This document shows positions 31,879 to 58,402 of a stretch of DNA of 64,000 nucleotides, one piece after another (positions within the stretch are counted from its first letter, which is position 1; every line of letters begins with the position of its first letter). The DNA comes from Antechinus flavipes (lineage: Eukaryota). The stretch is taken from contig NC_067402.1 in NCBI RefSeq assembly GCF_016432865.1, positions 223,510,001 to 223,574,000 of the forward strand, in the 5' to 3' direction. The translations under genes were made by a program, and so were the position numbers. The notes below the pieces were generated by a model. That model was not told the DNA's origin. It saw nothing but the letters and a program-made list of their open reading frames with translations, and ran no database searches.

Positions 31879-32021
31879 GTAAGTAAAGGACTAAGAGATA
31901 ACCAATCCCTTTCCCAATTTCTGTAATTGCCTGACTTAGGCCCTACTACCTTAAGTAATGACGGCCCTCATCTCTGTCCCTCTGGACTCTTCCTGAAGTG
32001 ACTGACCCCTTTCCCTGCTAG

Positions 32022-32180
32022 CATGTTGATCACTTATGACGACGTGGTCAAGATCTCAGACTTCGGAACATCCAAGGAGCTCAGCGACAAAAGCACTAAG
32101 ATGTCATTTGCAGGGACAGTGGCTTGGATGGCCCCAGAGGTGATCCGGAACGAACCTGTATCTGAGAAGGTGGACATTTG
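32022..32180 (+). CDS. MAP3K12: MAP3K12 kinase exon (DFG, APE)
   Basis: [52 protein letters not shown]; 159 nt. Confidence 0.97.
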
Positions 32181-39065: not shown

Positions 39066-39291
39066 AGGGAGAAGCTTATAAAACTAAATATGGTNNNNNN
39101 NNNNNNNNNNNNNNNNNNNNNNNNNNNNNNNNNNNNNNNNNNNNNNNNNNNNNNNNNNNNNNNNNNNNNNNNNNNNNNNNNNNNNNNNNNNNNNNNNNNN
39201 NNNNNNNNNNNNNNNNNNNNNNNNNNNNNNNNNNNNNNNNNNNNNNNNNNNNNNNNNNNNNNAAGGGGGTTATGGGTGAGTCTGCATTGTT
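38860..39291 (-). other. PCBP2: PCBP2 canonical 3'UTR, proximal part (interrupted by a gap)
   Basis: Follows the TAG; catatttagttttataagcttctccctg, a long U-rich tract (38986-39064) and gtggaatattaatacatttcag resemble the human UTR as recalled; ATTAAA on - strand at 38878-38883. Confidence 0.8.
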
Positions 39292-39328: not shown

Positions 39329-42300
39329 CTGCAACACAGAAATAGACAAAGCTTATAATCAGTTTTTCCTTTTAATCCAATAACACCCACCTTTCCCCAA
39401 AAATCTTCCTGGGGCACATGTATATAATTGTTTTTAAAGTAATGAAGTCAAAGGAAAAAAGTCCTGCCATCTAATTAGCTCAGAATTGATAGTGAGGTTA
39501 TATTCTCCTGAATTTTTTTATGCAAACTCAAATTACTTAAATAATACCTGTCTTTTGGATAAGAGAACCCTAAGGGGCTGGTGATCTTGAAAAAATCTTA
39601 AACTTTTGATTTCCAGAATATAAATTTCTGTACCCAAAGCACTATGTAGAGAAGAACCAATTGGATTGATGAGGAATAGAACTTGAAATCAAGAATTATC
39701 AGTAGCTATTATCTTCTAGGTTTCGATATTAAGGTATAAAACAGTACTGATCAAAAGAATATGATCCAATTAGCTTTTTCATTGAGGCTGGATTCCAAGT
39801 CCCAGTTATGATTACTCCTCTCTCAAACACAACCTCACATTGCTGCAAAAGAGATTTAATACTTATTCGTAGTCACATTGGCAGTTTATAATTAACTAAT
39901 ATGCCACTCTAGGGATTAATTAGTAAGAAAACTCAATTTAAGGAATTGGTAACATGCAGAATTATAATGCAACTTAGGGAAGGTGTGAATTGATTGGGAG
40001 TCTGACTAAAACTATCCTGCTTTGGATATTCAACATAAATCAGGTTAGGAAAGAAGTGTTACACTGAAAAAATAAAAGCAAAGGGCTTTGGATCCACAAA
40101 TCTCTTGCATAAAAATTGGCCATATTCTAATTCAAAAAGGGCAAGGGAAGACAAAAAAAATGGGGGAGGAGTGGAGGAAGCAGGGGATTTGGAGCAATTG
40201 AGGTCAGTCAAAACTGCTAGAGAAGGATGAAAGCAGGGGTTCCTGAGGAAGGAACTGTCGGATGTGGCCTGGATCCAAGGCAGAAGAGAGGCTATTGGAG
40301 GAGAATAGATGGAAGTATGAGAGCAACATTGGTCCCAAGGTCCCAGCAGGGTGAGCTGGGCCACTGGCCCAAGCCCCTACAGAGCCCAAGCTGTCCCCTT
40401 CTTACAGTAGGGGTGAGGATGTAAGGGAAAGCAGCCATAATCCAACAGAGCCTTTTAAGTTATCTGCCAATACTAAAGTGTAGAAAGTGTCACTATTAGA
40501 GTGGCCACGTGAGGGCGCCCCAAGCCTCTAATTTCTATATGAAAAACTAGACATCATCTCTCCAATTTCCTTTAACTTTCTTAGATCCCTCAAGTATCTA
40601 AAAGTCCCACTCAATAAATAAGCAGATTAAAAATAGAAATAGAAGCAGAGGTAGGGGCCAGAGTAGAGGAAAGTAGTGGTATTGGAATGCCACAGCACCA
40701 ATAACAATATATTTAGAAAACGGGACTATCAAGAAATCCACCCCTCTGTTAAACATTTTAAAAAGTATCTTCAACCTGGGAACTGGAATAGATAAATTTT
40801 ATGGTTGTGCCCAAGGACCCACCCCTTCTCCCTCCCTAGGCCAGATCCATTCAGGCATATAATCCGGAATAATAGATACTATGTAAAATAGCAGACTAGA
40901 AAAAATGGCCAACAGGATTAGACAATAAATAAATTAAATATGAACCAAAACTGGAAAGGGACGTCAATCTGTTCTTTCTCAAGCTTCACACTCTCTAATG
41001 CAAGAGAGGCCCACTATTCAAACTCTCCCATTATCTTTTGAAGCTAACCACACATTTCCATTAGTGGTCAACTATCTTGGGAGCATGAATGGTGCCATAA
41101 ACTAAAATTCCCCAGACTATCTTGCTGTTTGCTTCTAAGAGATAAAATTGGATCATCAGTTTCTAGACTAAATCAACCCAAAATGAGTGAATACTAAAAA
41201 ATAAAAAGTGAGACAGAATTTTTAAGAATCAAATTATATAGTCTAATTATCCCTAACTTACCCTCATTTTCTATTCATTTAATTTTCCTAGTTCCAGTGT
41301 TGACAGATCACATATGGATCTCACCTGTTTCCATAGGGTTTCGCTCAGTATGATAAAGGGGTTTAAAATAGATCACTGAGGTCTTTTTGTTTTAATTTCC
41401 AACAAATCTCCATGGGTAATTTCCCTTCAAGTTTTTTTGTTCTTGTTTGAGGGAAGAGGGGAGTGTCACAGTGGAACATCCAATGTGAATTTACATTAGG
41501 ACACTATATACCAAGAGACTACTATGCTCAAAGAAATCTGAAATTATGGGAAGCCACAGGGCACTCAACAAAAATATACATCATAGAATGCTCACCATCC
41601 CTGCTATAACAAAATAATTTAATCTAAATCAGCATTTTTATCAATTTTAAGAGGGACAGATAAAAGAGGCTCTGACCACACTTAGAGGGAATAAGAATAA
41701 AAACTGCCACAGGACAACCCCTCCTACTTCAAATCCCACTATGGATATTATAGTATGAAATCAGGCAACAAAAAAAGGAGGCTTGGTAGTAAATACACAC
41801 ACCTAATTTTCAGGTAAACATAAAGACCCTCCCCACCCTTTACCCTTTGGAATATCACATTGATAACTAACACAATTCTCACTGTGCCAATTTTATTATA
41901 GCTACACAAAGTTATTTCCAGCCAAGAGGCCTGCTAAGCAACTTAAAACTAAGAAAGAATTTAAAAAAAAAAAAGTTTAACGGAGTAGCCTTTATTCATT
42001 AAACACAGACCCTAACACATTGTCATATTGCAAGGCAAAAAAAGCTACAGAAGGGGGGAGAAAAAGGGAAGGAGAGAGGGAGAGAAGAATTGGGGGAGGG
42101 GAAGGAAAAGGGAAGAAGCAACAGCTACGGCTCTAGATAAGGAATTCAACAAATCACAGACTCTGAAACAGGCAAACACTCAGCTCAACTGCCTGGACCT
42201 AAGCAAGGATCTCCCCCCACCCCCTTCCCCCACAAAAGCACCAAGGAAGGTCACAAGCTCACAATTATTTGGTTTTCACCAATGTTAACACAAAGGAAAA

Positions 42301-42350
42301 AAAAATAAAGCCCAGAAACACTTTTGAAGGGATGCCCCAGAAATCTGCCA

Positions 42351-42435
42351 TCAGTAGGGAGAAAATCTCTGTTTCTCAGCTTTCAGTTTGTTAGTTACGC
42401 ATGGCACGGCAGAGGTGGTGGTGGTGGCAGCCGAA
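42351..42435 (-). CDS. PCBP2: Visible 3' part of an alternative PCBP2 terminal exon (remainder in gap 42436-42730)
   Basis: SAATTTTSAVPCVTNKLKAEKQRFSPY*; resembles the PCBP4 C-terminus (..KKAERQKFSPY); branch-point-like and polypyrimidine sequence on the other side of the gap; AATAAA on - strand at 41991-41996. Confidence 0.75.
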
Positions 42436-45400
42436 NNNNNNNNNNNNNNNNNNNNNNNNNNNNNNNNNNNNNNNNNNNNNNNNNNNNNNNNNNNNNNNNN
42501 NNNNNNNNNNNNNNNNNNNNNNNNNNNNNNNNNNNNNNNNNNNNNNNNNNNNNNNNNNNNNNNNNNNNNNNNNNNNNNNNNNNNNNNNNNNNNNNNNNNN
42601 NNNNNNNNNNNNNNNNNNNNNNNNNNNNNNNNNNNNNNNNNNNNNNNNNNNNNNNNNNNNNNNNNNNNNNNNNNNNNNNNNNNNNNNNNNNNNNNNNNNN
42701 NNNNNNNNNNNNNNNNNNNNNNNNNNNNNNAAAAAACCGGGTGGGTGGACGGGAAGACCACAAAAAAAAAAAAAAAAAAGTACAGGACAACGGCTTCAGT
42801 CATCAGTAAGTGCCTCTGGCTGTCAAACAGGAGGGTCTCAAACCAGCAGTTTTGCTAACTACATCTTACTTGTAGCCCGATCTCCCCACCCCCACCCCCC
42901 ACCCCCATCATTATTGTCTTAAGATTTTGAGCTTCTAATGTTGTCTAAAACTTCTACCTCAAATGTGGCAAACTAGAAGTGTAACACAATCTAATGACTA
43001 TTGTACCCCACCCCGATCCCAAATAGCAAGGGATCACCTAAAAAGGAGTTAGATATTCTGAGGTCATCATCCCTCCCATTCAAAGCATCAATGTCCTGAG
43101 TCCTTTAAGAATCAACTCAAAACAATCACATCAATATAGAGAAACAAATTTTTGGTTCATTTTTAAATCAATCTGGGTTTAGAAATTATTATTTATTCCC
43201 TTACCTATTTTCTTAATTGTAGAGTCATTTAAACACACATACACACAAGTATGAGGCTATTTTCACTTATCTAAATAGCAGATTTTCAAAAACTCAGCCC
43301 AGCCCACTGTTTTGCTCATAAGGTACTAAACAGAGTGTTTCCCAAATTCCCAAATTCTGTAAGGAGAGTAGCACCTTGGAACAAAGTGTTAAGGAGTATT
43401 ATCAGAATTTGCTTAAGTGGAAGCAAGAAGAAAAACAGCAAGATTAAGAAAAGGCTTATTATTGCTTCTACTGATACAAGCCTGAAGCCCTGCAGCTGAG
43501 AACTAAATTGCATGGTATCAGATCCTTGACTGTGTACTGGAGAAGCTCATCTCCAAAACAAAGACTTTCTATAAACTAACTCCACTGGCTGATGGACCCT
43601 GGCTGCAGCAGCTGCCACCACCTCCTCTGCCACCTTCCCCAGTCAAAACCAAAGTTAAGCATCTGAGTACAAGAGAACCCAGGACTTCTACTACCTGGAA
43701 TTGTTAATTTCAAAGGAAAATAAATGGTGGAAGAAAAGAAGGTATATTCTTAAGTAATTGCTCTCAAATAACTAAGGTAAAATTAAGGTAAGAAGTTTAA
43801 GCTTTTTGGGATACACTGTCTCCAAAATTGAGGGTACAATACCATTTATTTAACAGGATGACCTAATTTGGGGTTATCACAGAGAAAAATAGGTATTATA
43901 AAAATGTGCCACTCTGTCCAGTAAGAACCAGCAAGAGCAAGCAGTTGAATACTTGCAACTGCAAGCTTGCTCAAGACAAAATAATGCAGGTACTTTATTT
44001 AAATTTCATAATCAAAAATAAACCTCTAACTTAGTAAGCAGCCTCTTTTCAGTGAATTAAATAAGGACAAATTTGAATACTCAAGACCCTATGATTTTCA
44101 AACTATCCTTTCTACACACATCAAGGTATGCTAACTCTTAAAGAGCCCAATTTTCTATCCAAAAATGCCTTATATTGCCTACCAGCATAAAAAAAAAAAG
44201 TGAGCAGGGACAGGTGACAGAAAATAACTTACAATCATCGTAAGTAATGAATTCAGGAAAAATAATAAATATTTCAGCTGGCCACAGGATTTGTCATCAA
44301 ATCCAGATCATAGTGTCAGATCCCTTGACCTTGGGTTAATTGTCAACAAGGGTAAAGCCCTATGTCCAGTCCCTTCTGTTTCTGGGGCTTGGGGGGAAAG
44401 GGAGTGAATAGGAAATGGATATTTAAAAACTAAGGATTTCCATATCCCTGGGGAAATAGAAGATGGAGGCAGAACAAATAAAAGTGTAAGGCATTGAGAC
44501 AAATATCTATGCTACAGATCACTTCAGAACACTAGGCTAAATATGGAAAGGGAAAAAAATTTGTATTCTCAATGTCCCATGTTGTTCAGGAAACCGAGGC
44601 GGTTACCCTCTAAGGCACCCTTCTGCCTCTATCATTCAGGCATGTCTTTGTCACAGGCATCTGCTTATCTCCAGTCTAAACTATGTTCCACATGCTTTAA
44701 GTAACCTGTTTAATACTAAAATATTTGGTGGTCTTTATAATGGCTCCATGAAAGGGAACTATGGGTGATTTAAAGTCTTAATCATGAGCCTAAAAATCAA
44801 CACGTAAAAGAATAGAAAATGGAAATTGCTTATTATTATTGCTATATAGGATCTACATATATTTTAGGAGCCACAAAAGCTATAGCACAGTAGCATTATT
44901 TGATTCCAATAAAAGCGAGAAAAAAATCAATGGCACATCACTAGATGGAATAGTTTATATATTTTTAAAAATTAATCTTACATCATCCCTGTCCAAGTTC
45001 CTTACCTGAAGCAATGGAACATACTTGTATTATCTCACACTAATATTAAATGTCTTTGAGCTTCAGTCCTCAACCAACAGATGCTTTTCATGCAGTTCTG
45101 CCTGCCATATTTCACTATTCTCCTTAACTCAATTAGAGAATAAAGTTTGTAAACTTCATTCTCCCAATTACATTATTTGAAGAAAGAAACTACAAACAGC
45201 AATCTTATTAGGGGCTGTGATGGCTAGTCTTATCAATATGACTATGAGGGCATGTTCATTCTGACCAAGCTATCATAATTAGCAAAGAATAAAGTGGGAA
45301 TCTTAGAGAACAAATATATTAATCCTCTCCCTGGCTTGGTCCCATAAATGAGCTAATACGTGTCTTTGTTGAAAATACCAAGATCCAATCTATTTTTCCT

Positions 45401-45630: not shown

Positions 45631-45855
<225 letters not shown>

Positions 45856-46650: not shown

Positions 46651-48102
46651 CTAAAAGACAGAAGAGACCAGGGAAAATTTAATGCACAATAGAGCAGGCT
46701 CCCATTGTGTAGCATATTAACCTTAATAGGAAACAGAACAGACCACAAAACCCAGCATTGACTGTTGGAATTCATGACTACCTTGGTGAGGTTCCCAAGG
46801 AGGAAGAAAAGGTAGATAATGCTGTTAAGTGCTTCCTCCACACGAACCCTTCCCCTCAAAGAGGTCGCCTCATATATCACCTTCCTTTCAAACCAGGCCT
46901 GCAGCTTAGAGAGGGTGCAGGGGACCCTCACACAGGACCATTATTAACACCAGACTTTGTTAGCTGAAGCTACCCTCCCACCCGATCAGCAACCACAGTT
47001 GGTGTGTTCCAACTCTGCCAATCTTACCGGATGCCTACTGACACCAGTACCAAGAACACCAGGCTAGCTATCACAAGAAGCCAGGGTTCTGTTTTGCTAG
47101 GCACACATGCAGAGTTGTGCTTTAAATACAACCACACCAGCTAACATACCCAGTTTACCCTAGACAAGCTCAAAAGGATAAAAACTGGCAAATAAGGGGA
47201 ATTAAGGCAGGGATTTCTCTAGATGTCCCCCTTATAAAATGGTCAGCAATTTCTTTTCTTCTTTCTTTTCCTTAAATGCCAAGTTTTCCGCCCCCAGCAT
47301 GAATCCCATTCCCCAGCAATTTCAGAAAGGAGCAGAGGACCTGGATTAAACAAACCAGACCAACTGATTAACCCTTCCAGCCCCATTCTGCTCTCAGCTG
47401 TGGCTGCTTGTCTCTACATGTTTTAAAAGGGGGAGGGGCCAGATCCATCAAGGGACCTCATCAGGCCCACACCAATGCTCTCTCAGCTCCTTTGCCATGT
47501 GAAGGTCGCTGGTATGGTTTGTGGGCAGCGAAACAAANNNNNNNNNNNNNNNNNNNNNNNNNNNNNNNNNNNNNNNNNNNNNNNNNNNNNNNNNNNNNNN
47601 NNNNNNNNNNNNNNNNNNNNNNNNNNNNNNNNNNNNNNNNNNNNNNNNNNNNNNNNNNNNNNNNNNNNNNNNNNNNNNNNNNNNNNNNAGGGACAATTCA
47701 TCCTTATTATAAAAAACTCTACACAATTTGGCACAATGGATAGTCTCTACCCAGGTCTAGGAATAGCTGGTGGAGAGAAAGGGGGTGCCAGTCAGATCCA
47801 GGAGGCAGCAATCAGAATGGGTGAGAAGAAATATAGTCAGCCTACCCTGGGCCTGACAAGCACTCCCAGCCCTCCCCCCCAACCTTCCAGGGCCATTTTA
47901 AAACAACTCACCCCAAAAGAAAACCATGTTTAAAAAGAGAGACATTACCTCCTGGGGTCTAGGCACACTAGACAGGCTTTAAAAACAGCAGGATGCCTGG
48001 TATCGCAGTTTTTGTTTTTGATTACAGAGACAAGCTGGGGCCTTGGGGCCTGGCCTCTGGCTTGCATTATACCTTACAGAACAAATACTGAGGTATCCAT
48101 AC

Positions 48103-50457: not shown

Positions 50458-52025
50458 NNNNNNNNNNNNNNNNNNNNNNNNNNNNNNNNNNNNNNNNNNN
50501 NNNNNNNNNNNNNNNNNNNNNNNNNNNNNNNNNNNNNNNNNNNNNNNNNNNNNNNNNNNNNNNNNNNNNNNNNNNNNNNNNNNNNNNNNNNNNNNNNNNN
50601 NNNNNNNNNNNNNNNNNNNNNNNNNNNNNNNNNNNNNNNNNNNNNNNNNNNNNNNNNNNNNNNNNNNNNNNNNNNNNNNNNNNNNNNNNNNNNNNNNNNN
50701 NNNNNNNNNNNNNNNNNNNNNNNNNNNNNNNNNNNNNNNNNNNNNNNNNNNNNNNNNNNNNNNNNNNNNNNNNNNNNNNNNNNNNNNNNNNNNNNNTTTT
50801 TCCTTTTTCCTTTAAAAGGAGCTCACAACATGATTTGAAACGAGCCGCAGTGTTTTGTTTTTTTTTTTTCTTTCTTTCTTTTTTTAAAAAAAGTTACCTA
50901 GTGGCAGATTTCACGCCGCGCGCTTGGGCTGTTTTTCAACAAAGGGATAGGGATGGAAGAGCTTAAGGAACCAGACCTAGGGCAGTTCCAGGGATTATTT
51001 AGGGAGTAAAATGACCCTGGAGTCTACTCCACCACAAAGGAGCAAAAGGGACACATGTCCACTTGTGGGCAGACTGGAAGCTGGTCCAAACAAAAAGGCC
51101 ACTGAGAAGATGCTCCAGGGCTGGGCCACTCACGGAAGAAGCTGCAAGCCTTTTAGAGGGTGGTCAACTGAAAGGGAATTGCCAAGGGAAAGGGAGGGGA
51201 GGAAAAAGAGGTATGAAGGGGAAGGTGGTAGGTTGGGGAACGGAAAGGAACTGAAAGCAGGACATGTAAATGGACCGCAACAATTGCTGCCCTATAGCCT
51301 GGAACTAGTGCAAGTCCCAAACCAGGATTGGAAAATCCAGGAGTAGTAACCTGGACCTCCAGCTTAGAATAGAAAGTCCTTAGCCTACCCCTCCTCACTG
51401 TACTGACTGGGTCTCTGTTCATCCCACCTATCTGCCCCTGTCTCTCAAACCCAGTTTTCCATAGTGGTGCATGAATGCTAACAGTGAGTGTACTGTGTAC
51501 CTACTGAATGAACCAGAGGTATGTGATTTGCCTTTAGGGCCCTGTGAAAAGTCCAAGTCAGCCTAAATATTGTGCCAATTCTCTGAAAATGTGAATGAGA
51601 TAGACCTCAGGACTATGATGTTCTGATCCCAGGCCCCTCTGGTATCCCCTTTATATCTGGTCCCAGGTCAAATGGAAACAAGGTAGAACTGGTAAGCAGA
51701 GATAGAAAACAGGTCATGCTCGGGGTGGAAAAGGGCTCAGCTCCATCCACTTGCCCCAGCCAGCTACCAAAGTAACAAGTTATGTTTCAAGTTGAACCCC
51801 AATGCTCCCATACTAGCCTACCTATTATTACTTAAAATCCTAATGCAATGGTGCTGGCCAATTCCTCTGTGATTATCACAAGCACGGCCTGAGTTTAAAC
51901 CACTTTGCAGGAAGCAAATTTAAAGGAGTATCGGGATAAAGGGGGTGTTTTGGTGTCCTCCAAGATTCTAATACCAAGGACAACAATCTTTCTTCAATGC
52001 TTATTAATACATTGCCCTAGCTGAG

Positions 52026-52776: not shown

Positions 52777-54526
52777 CTGGGAGAGAGTCAGAGGGGAAAA
52801 AAAACAAAAAGAGATAAGGTTTCAAAGCTGTTTCAGCTGTGTGGCTAATGCTCACACAGGTCACAATAAAAACAAAGTAACCTACCCAATCTTCCACCTA
52901 AGTGCATTCTGCCTAACCTTAAATAATTTGTGCAACATACAATAGCACTGGGCTAGTTCTGGCTATACAAAAAAACTTGGGCAGAGAACTCAAACCAAAA
53001 TGGTCTCCAAAAAGTTCTTAAGCTATGCTGAAAATGACTTTTCTAAGTTTATTCACTGCAAGAAAATCGGAGTATGACTTGCTTTTCTTTAACACATGTT
53101 AAAGATGTTTTTATGTGCCAGGCCATCTAAATCAGAAAATTAAATAAAAGCCAGAATTTTGTTTCTGGCTTGATTATCAGAGAAAGAAGTAGCATAGCCT
53201 GGATATTTTATACCAAACATCGCTTCTTAATCTTTGATCTGATTATATTTCCTTTTCTTTTCAATAAAACTAAACCCAATTTTATAACCTAAAATTGTTT
53301 CTTCTTCGGAACAGTTATTGTCTATTTGGGAATCAGATCAATAGCATGTTGCTAAGACTTCATTAAACCTGGATTTTAAGTTAACACCTTGTCCTGTGAA
53401 TCTGATCTAGCACATTTCTGCCATCCACCATACCCAATTAATGACCTCCTTCCTCTCCTTTTTGAAGTTCAATGGGTAGAGATCATTATCACTCACTAGT
53501 TTCTATTTTAGTGCTCTGGATTTTATAAAGCCAAGGGGAAAGAAAGCATAAATCCAAATGCACAACATAATTCTAGCCTATATAAATTTAATTTAGGTGT
53601 GTTGCCCCCCTCCCNNNNNNNNNNNNNNNNNNNNNNNNNNNNNNNNNNNNNNNNNNNNNNNNNNNNNNNNNNNNNNNNNNNNNNNNNNNNNNNNNNNNNN
53701 NNNNNNNNNNNNNNNNNNNNNNNNNNNNNNNNNNNNNNNNNNNNNNNNNNNNNNNNNNNNNNNNNNNNNNNNNNNNNNNNNNNNNNNNNNNNNNNNNNNN
53801 NNNNNNNNNNNNNNNNGCACACCTCATTGTATTATCAATAAGTAGGAAGGTATGTGCCCCAGTAGTGCCTTATTCCCAGCAAGCAATACCCTTCCCTTCC
53901 CCCTTCAGCACTCTCTACCTACTACTCTTCCCCCATTCCATCTGAAATGGTTTAATCCAAGCTGAAAATAAGTCAGGCTCCAAAAGCTGGGGGCTGAGTA
54001 ACAGACTAAATTTAACCTGATCCCAAGAAAAGGTTCCTTCAAGACTATGCCTCTAAGCTAATGACCTGCCTAGTTTTTTGCCTTTCCTGGTCAAAGGAAA
54101 AAAGACACCAAGAAAGAATGGTTTTCTATAAGGTTCAGTTATTTCTCCAGAACAAAAGTTTTTCTCACAGAAAAGAGGGCAGTACTCTTCTAGGACCCAT
54201 ACAAATTTTATTAGCATTCAAACTCACCTCCCACCAGAATGAGAGAAATTTGTTTTTCTATAATCCATTAAGATAGAATTCTACCTCAAAACCTAGGGCT
54301 TCTATTTCCCCATCACACAAGTCTTGATCAAGAAATAACTTATTTCTCCCAATTTTCCATCTCTCACCCCCCCCCAATTACCACAATTCCCTTAACGCTA
54401 AAATTCCCAGAGACCCTCTTTCACAAAGATCTAAGAATCAAACTAGTGATGGCCTTTATCCCTTTAACTATCCTCAAGTAACTCCAATAAAATTGAAACA
54501 GGACCAATTCTAAAAGTCAAAAGTTA

Positions 54527-58238: not shown

Positions 58239-58402
58239 NNNNNNNNNNNNNNNNNNNNNNNNNNNNNNNNNNNNNNNNNNNNNNNNNNNNNNNNNNNNNN
58301 NNNNNNNNNNNNNNNNNNNNNNNNNNNNNNNNNNNNNNNNNNNNNNNNNNNNNNNNNNNNNNNNNNNNNNNNNNNNNNNNNNNNNNNNNNNNNNNNNAAA
58401 AA
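58239..58402 (-). other. PCBP2: PCBP2 ATG-containing exon, almost entirely hidden in a gap
   Basis: Acceptor ccattccag|TTTTT at 58402 abuts the 159-nt gap; MDTGVIEGGLNVTLTIRLLMHGK is not found elsewhere; inference. Confidence 0.65.

Follow-up and report, generated by a model that had tools for sequence, protein, structure and literature searches.

The stretch analysed here (64,000 nucleotides (nt) of the Antechinus flavipes genome, contig NC_067402.1, forward-strand positions 223,510,001 to 223,574,000; hereafter the window, in whose coordinates all positions are given) carries PCBP2 on its minus strand. A first-pass annotation of this DNA had proposed that the intron between the exon encoding the third KH domain (KH3) and the canonical last coding exon contains an alternative terminal exon, which would replace the short canonical C terminus of PCBP2 with a long tail. 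The features that bear on this proposal are listed below in the direction of transcription, with a slash marking each splice junction.

45801-45632, minus strand: PCBP2 KH3 exon, donor ...GTCAG/gtaagg at 45632/45631; phase 2, two codon bases left.
42796-42809, minus strand: branch-point-like heptamers TTACTGA (42809-42803) and TGACTGA (42802-42796), in a region that aligns with fox sequence 5′ of the fox acceptor.
42731-42795, minus strand: polypyrimidine tract running into a block of unspecified bases, with an 18-T run (42779-42762) and the C-rich patch CCCGTCCACCCACCC (42753-42739).
42436-42730, no strand: run of 295 N (the N-run), predicted by homology to cover about 28-33 nt of intron with the acceptor AG and then about 268 nt of coding sequence.
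42354-42435, minus strand: visible end of the alternative coding exon, 27 codons (42434-42354) ending ...EKQRFSPY.
42353-42351, minus strand: stop codon TGA of the alternative exon, read directly.
41975-42350, minus strand: alternative 3′ untranslated region (UTR), about 375 nt, with AATAAA at 41996-41991 and then a T-rich downstream element.
41897-41892, minus strand: second AATAAA, about 100 nt beyond the first, its surroundings kept in fox.
39330-39295, minus strand: canonical last coding exon, (..R)LSSETGGMGSS and stop, acceptor ...ttgcag/G at 39330, stop codon 39297-39295.

The protein encoded by the KH3 exon is 100% identical to PCBP2 KH3 of many species, and the donor confirms the claimed phase-2 end at 45632. 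Other landmarks of the earlier proposal were found in place: the branch-point-like heptamers and the long U/C tract beyond the gap lie at 42809-42731, with pyrimidines making up 76% of the last 70 visible bases before the N-run, and the AATAAA at 41996-41991 precedes the canonical last exon in the direction of transcription. The open frame ending ...EKQRFSPY does run to a stop at 42351 and does abut the 295-N run, but the start given for it, 42435, was one base off: whole codons begin at 42434, 42435 being the last base of a codon that the N-run interrupts. A BLAST search for further tail exons in the intron between 42731 and 45631 gave noise only.

We compared the locus with four amniote loci (fox, L001; penguin, L002; horned lizard, L003; passerine, L004). 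In all four, the tail is a single exon at the same position, 3′ of the KH3 exon. Its acceptor, ...CCTCTGTTACAG/TTTAGAAA (reading T TTA GAA after the junction), is identical in the four loci, and in each of them AG+T forms a Ser codon at the junction, in the phase that the KH3 donor requires. The exon encodes 109-117 Ser/Thr/Pro-rich residues with a basic-R-x-x-PY end, in line with the tail of roughly 110-120 Ser/Thr-rich residues that had been foreseen. Polyadenylation (polyA) hexamers lie 3′ of the alternative exon, and the canonical SSETGGMG exon further on, in fox, lizard and passerine; in penguin, the corresponding regions fall in gaps or were not found. The proposed structure, with LSSETGGMGSS replaced and a different 3′ UTR attached, is thus the layout of the orthologous loci. 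In fox the hexamers stand at +317 and +412 past the stop of the alternative exon, and blocks of the 3′ UTR together with the entire neighbourhood of the polyA signals are conserved between the window and fox. The presence of two conserved AATAAA hexamers raises the possibility that the exon owns two cleavage sites.

Within the window, the visible part of the frame carries its own evidence. Its last eight residues recur identically at the C termini of PCBP2 long-isoform models, and its terminal 12-mer ends 109 fetched proteins, the commonest 12-residue ending among them. This terminal match indicates that the visible frame is more than a chance opening. Both flanks of the N-run are colinear with the Arctic fox locus by alignment, and the fixed C of the CCACCCACCC patch lies 304 nt from the Ser codon at 42434, against 301 nt in fox, which indicates that the two sides of the N-run are continuous and that its length is correct to within one codon; the 3-nt difference is itself frame-compatible and is no proof of an intact frame. 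The fox counterpart of the pyrimidine tract runs 23-33 nt further, to ...TTACAG/, and the corresponding AG of the window falls in the N-run. By homology, the window acceptor is predicted at about 42700-42705, roughly 25-30 nt into the N-run and right after the visible pyrimidine tract, which agrees with the earlier estimate of a junction near 42710. The SLE.AK start of the tail and the motif LLGMKP.PLLAL were present in all orthologues examined, and their window counterparts would likewise fall within the N-run.

The same kind of masking recurs along the gene. When a bat PCBP2 protein was aligned to the window, the first coding exon, the second KH2 exon and the SPEVKGYW exon, all constitutive, were the only ones left unmapped, and each lies exactly under another N-run. 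This coincidence indicates that the N-runs are true-length masks of real sequence rather than assembly gaps, and they look like deliberate masks over the most conserved stretches. The other N-runs are at 58239-58397, 53615-53816, 50458-50796, 47538-47688 and 39095-39262; one of them sits where a 31-residue cassette exon is expected (50458-50796), and one lies in the canonical 3′ UTR just past the stop.

The alternative exon is coding, under purifying selection and in phase in amniotes. Across the six pairs formed by the four loci, the ratio of non-synonymous to synonymous divergence (dN/dS) is 0.06-0.28, and synonymous and non-synonymous changes differ with a Fisher P of 3e-3 to 2e-12. Changes are concentrated at third codon positions (for example, 4, 1 and 27 changes at positions 1, 2 and 3 between lizard and passerine), and all exon length differences between the amniote pairs are whole codons. 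The other two frames of the exon contain 4-5 stops in fox and penguin.

The tail is also found far beyond PCBP2. Searched by phmmer against 1.84 billion representatives, the KH3 exon matched many vertebrate and invertebrate PCBP-family proteins whose C terminus is a basic stretch and then [FY]-x-PY; 264 of the 491 proteins fetched end in PY, with the same kind of basic [FY]-x-P-Y ending. We aligned KH3 plus tail from 30 sequences, covering PCBP2 of mammals, birds, lizard, amphibians, shark and fish, PCBP3-like and PCBP4-like proteins, and invertebrate homologues. PCBP2 models show the order SLE[NS]AKPSS..., a Ser/Thr/Pro-rich middle, ...SSLLGMKP[IV]PLLALNVV... and ...NKLK.EKQRFSPY, and the same order of motifs holds throughout the alignment. 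In 30 of 30 sequences, invertebrates included, the last two residues are PY, and nearly all have Ser directly after KH3; the residue before PY is Ser or Ala, and the basic residues vary.

Fish, amphibian and sauropsid PCBP3-like and PCBP4-like genes have this tail as their constitutive end, as do invertebrate PCBPs. The tails of PCBP4 (alphaCP-4/MCG10), non-mammalian PCBP3-like proteins and invertebrate PCBPs share with that of PCBP2 the elements S[LM]E..K, (L)LG.K..P.L.L, a basic stretch and a terminal [FY]-x-PY. In these relatives the tail is the constitutive or main end, whereas in PCBP2 it is one of two, and the middle cannot be aligned between paralogues. For PCBP4, whose exact human ending was absent from the fetched proteins, the first-pass annotation gives ..KKAERQKFSPY. 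The earlier suggestion of an ancestral PCBP4-type C terminus is thereby borne out and widened: by these comparisons, it is well supported that an ancestral PCBP C terminus has been kept in PCBP2 as an alternative module, and we infer that the short LSSETGGMGSS-type end is the derived state.

AlphaFold2 modelling of the fox isoform with the 30-sequence alignment gave a confident KH3 domain whose last helix extends through the first tail residues. From residue ~100 to ~200, the blockwise mean predicted local distance difference test score stays below ~50, rising to ~65 for the last eight residues, and no docking of the tail on KH3 was seen in this model.

Neither the exon nor the isoform is a discovery, as public annotation already includes both very widely, in hundreds of species. 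We ran word-indexed searches, using as queries regions of database proteins of other species. The first listed RefSeq-model PCBP2 isoforms of shrew, mole-rat, fox, penguin, caecilian and frog. A search with the tail gave 1133 database matches, and those listed were PCBP2 isoform or partial gene models, many from birds and reptiles and some from a bat; the tail measures 108-122 residues in the complete models listed, and a few models are truncated or frameshifted. The first-pass annotation was therefore right about similar isoforms in automated annotations: they are RefSeq PCBP2 'isoform X' and similar gene models. Examples include Sorex araneus X17/X18, Heterocephalus glaber X19, Vulpes lagopus X1/X2, Saccopteryx leptura X9-X13, Haliaeetus albicilla X1, Gallus gallus XP_015155819-26 and many 'PCBP2 protein, partial' bird models. 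These models use the exon, the junction after ...QYLINV, the 109-117-residue tail and the ending proposed for the window; they differ in being computer models in other species, and in the window the upstream three-quarters of the exon is masked. A functional study of long-tail PCBP2 was not found in the literature.

Taken as a whole, the locus very probably contains an alternative last exon of PCBP2 in the intron between KH3 and the canonical last exon. The KH3 donor at 45632 would be joined to the hidden acceptor at about 42700-42705, and the transcript would be cleaved after the AATAAA at 41996-41991. The resulting mRNA would encode PCBP2 with a tail of about 117 residues in place of the 11-residue LSSETGGMGSS, and would carry a short private 3′ UTR in place of the canonical one. 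In the protein, SLE[NS]AK would prolong the last helix of KH3, followed by the hydrophobic LLGMKP[IV]PLLAL and the basic C-terminal ...K.EKQRFSPY-COOH, with the rest predicted to be disordered. Last-exon choice would then alter UTR-borne regulation and, if the terminal PY is a binding site for transportin-1 (karyopherin beta2), import or chaperoning as well. Through the C-rich patch, use of the acceptor may be favoured by PCBPs themselves.

A more ambitious version of this account holds that the 11-residue end of PCBP1, PCBP2 and PCBP3, which the literature takes as the standard C terminus, is a vertebrate innovation, that the bilaterian tail was kept as a strongly selected alternative last exon of PCBP2, that the PY is a transportin-1 site, and that the gene thereby switches between two modes of import or chaperoning and two 3′ UTRs, perhaps helped by PCBP binding to the C-rich tract ahead of the acceptor. 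We consider this full combination doubtful.

Several observations weigh against the alternative last exon or against parts of the account built on it. The acceptor and about three-quarters of the coding part are masked in the window, so that stops or a frame break in this copy are possible. Contigs from 18 small sequencing runs contain 77-100% of sampled 31-mers of 41975-42435, which is a hint of expression; the runs are only guessed to be RNA, and the contigs could conceivably derive from pre-mRNA. With no covering family in Pfam and with predicted disorder, the tail is most readily understood as carrying short linear motifs. The remaining points concern the identity of the terminal motif and the possibility that selection acts on the RNA, and we take them up with the explanations that they favour.

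As far as sequence and the structural model go, the terminal motif fits every checkable rule for a proline-tyrosine nuclear localization signal (PY-NLS): it lies in a segment predicted to be disordered, whose last 30 residues carry a net charge of +3 to +7 in 13 representatives; it matches R/K/H-x(2-5)-P-Y behind a basic or hydrophobic motif, with R-F-S-P-Y preceded by K.K.EK; and it stands at the extreme C terminus. The PCBP2 tail resembles the PY-NLS class, which includes the M9 signal of hnRNP A1 and the C termini of FUS, EWS and TAF15, in that an hnRNP-type RNA-binding protein carries R-x-x-P-Y at its very end within a positively charged segment predicted to be disordered, and its extreme C-terminal position is that seen in FUS. 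A PY-NLS function of the tail is plausible on these grounds. As our preferred mechanism, we regard the terminal basic-R-x-x-PY as a candidate PY-type site for transportin-1, a tentative assignment that falls somewhat short of an even chance.

The tail may equally be translated and end in some other short linear motif, such as a cytoplasmic anchor, a contact for a turnover factor or a site dependent on Tyr or Ser-Pro phosphorylation; this reading is a serious contender, on which we would not quite bet. The consensus R-x(2-5)-PY is loose, and the variable basic residues and the alternation of Ser and Ala before PY leave room for other functions, while the two further conserved motifs upstream suggest a composite interaction surface. 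PCBP3 and PCBP4, paralogues with the same ending, are described as restricted to the cytoplasm in a review that cites Chkheidze and Liebhaber 2003 (PMC9701828), which sets the PCBP tails apart from the PY-NLS class. That PCBP4 has such an ending and is nevertheless cytoplasmic argues against a strong autonomous import signal. A link between PCBPs and PY-NLSs was not found in the literature. Set against this reading are the agreement of the motif with the PY-NLS rules and the invariance of its PY across bilaterians.

A different explanation, compatible with coding, is that the exon is mainly regulatory: its splicing and polyadenylation would divert pre-mRNA from the canonical mRNA and its 3′ UTR, possibly as PCBP1/2 feedback at the C-rich tract, and the tail would be secondary. 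Synonymous divergence of the exon is 2-3 times lower than that of the KH3 exon in fox versus sauropsid pairs (P 0.002-0.03), and stretches of 60 nt in the exon are identical between fox and penguin, which points to added constraint at the nucleotide (RNA or DNA) level. Nucleotide-level constraint is common in regulated alternative exons of RNA-binding protein genes, where highly conserved, self-regulatory alternative exons are themselves common. The PCBP2 exon resembles such exons in its low synonymous divergence, its conserved flanking intron, with an acceptor region identical across amniotes, and its predicted alternative use.

The C-rich patch adds to the case for regulation. It is similar in the window, fox and lizard, whereas penguin shows only a CCCACCC end, after a gap, and the 60 nt before the passerine acceptor are T-rich and without the patch. 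PCBP1/2 enhance splice acceptors through C-rich tracts (PMC4797308), and the patch CCCGTCCACCCACCC suggests, by analogy, a predicted PCBP binding site and self-regulation of last-exon choice. However, the coding signature is clear, with whole-codon length changes and dN/dS well below 1, and the constitutive use of the same tail in paralogues and invertebrates argues that the peptide itself is selected. A mainly regulatory exon is therefore possible, though on the unlikely side.

Highly improbable is a non-coding transcript or a pseudo-exon decayed in this species, with the frame a relic or part of an overlapping long non-coding RNA: the masked acceptor and largely masked frame, the same-strand overlapping human transcript PCBP2-OT1 (PMC9877250) and the independently transcribed 590-nt TUC338 RNA inside PCBP2 (PMC9829027) leave it some room, but the 27 visible codons show no disruption and agree with orthologues, fox shares the flanks, the polyA signal and the spacing, and the protein is under purifying selection in four amniotes. 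Coordinates for TUC338, uc.338 or PCBP2-OT1 were not found in the literature. The ultraconserved PCBP2 exon of Bejerano 2006 is reportedly a 31-residue cassette exon, and TUC338, we assume, probably maps to that cassette, expected under the N-run at 50458-50796. An identification of the present exon with the uc.338/TUC338/PCBP2-OT1 transcript was dropped because the ultraconserved exon is reportedly this cassette. The cassette of the uc.338/TUC338 literature is internal and occupies another position in the gene, whereas the exon described here is terminal, coding and equipped with a polyA site of its own.

Much research has gone into PCBP2 as a regulator of mRNA stability, translation, splicing, iron delivery and viral replication, and nearly all of it has used the short-ended protein. 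The present comparisons show a second, deeply conserved C terminus that is under purifying selection, bears three conserved short motifs and is accompanied by a different 3′ UTR. If the long form is made in appreciable amounts, knock-downs, antibodies and constructs that ignore the tail may miss some of PCBP2 biology, and the tail would offer a simple handle on how PCBP localization is set.

Some database models suggest further ends for the same region. A tail of 51 residues, taken from Camelus ferus model P0029, in which KH3 is joined to an internal AG, was considered and dropped, as the four loci and later matches give 109-117 residues. Fox (L001 15630-15700) and penguin (L002 27709-27779) share an identical pyrimidine-rich ...CCCCTTGTGTCTCCAG/T inside the alternative exon; used as an acceptor, it would yield the 51-residue P0029 tail, in frame and with Ser at the junction. 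This shorter tail could be either a minor variant or an artefact of the gene model. In Camelus dromedarius model P0291, the first 37 nt of the exon form a mini-exon, which is joined to the canonical last exon out of frame. Another PCBP2 end after ...QYLINVS (CLPVLLPAYL...) is found in P0294 and P0296 (Macaca testis cDNA QtsA-17141), a real cDNA. The last intron of PCBP2 thus seems to hold several alternative 3′ ends.

Downstream of PCBP2, the minus strand at 32001-32166 of the window has 65-76% protein identity to the odd tail of P0032, in which RYRFIADHLGG... comes after KH3. In another species, this tail seems to be one more alternative or read-through 3′ exon; its counterpart in the window carries an in-frame stop.

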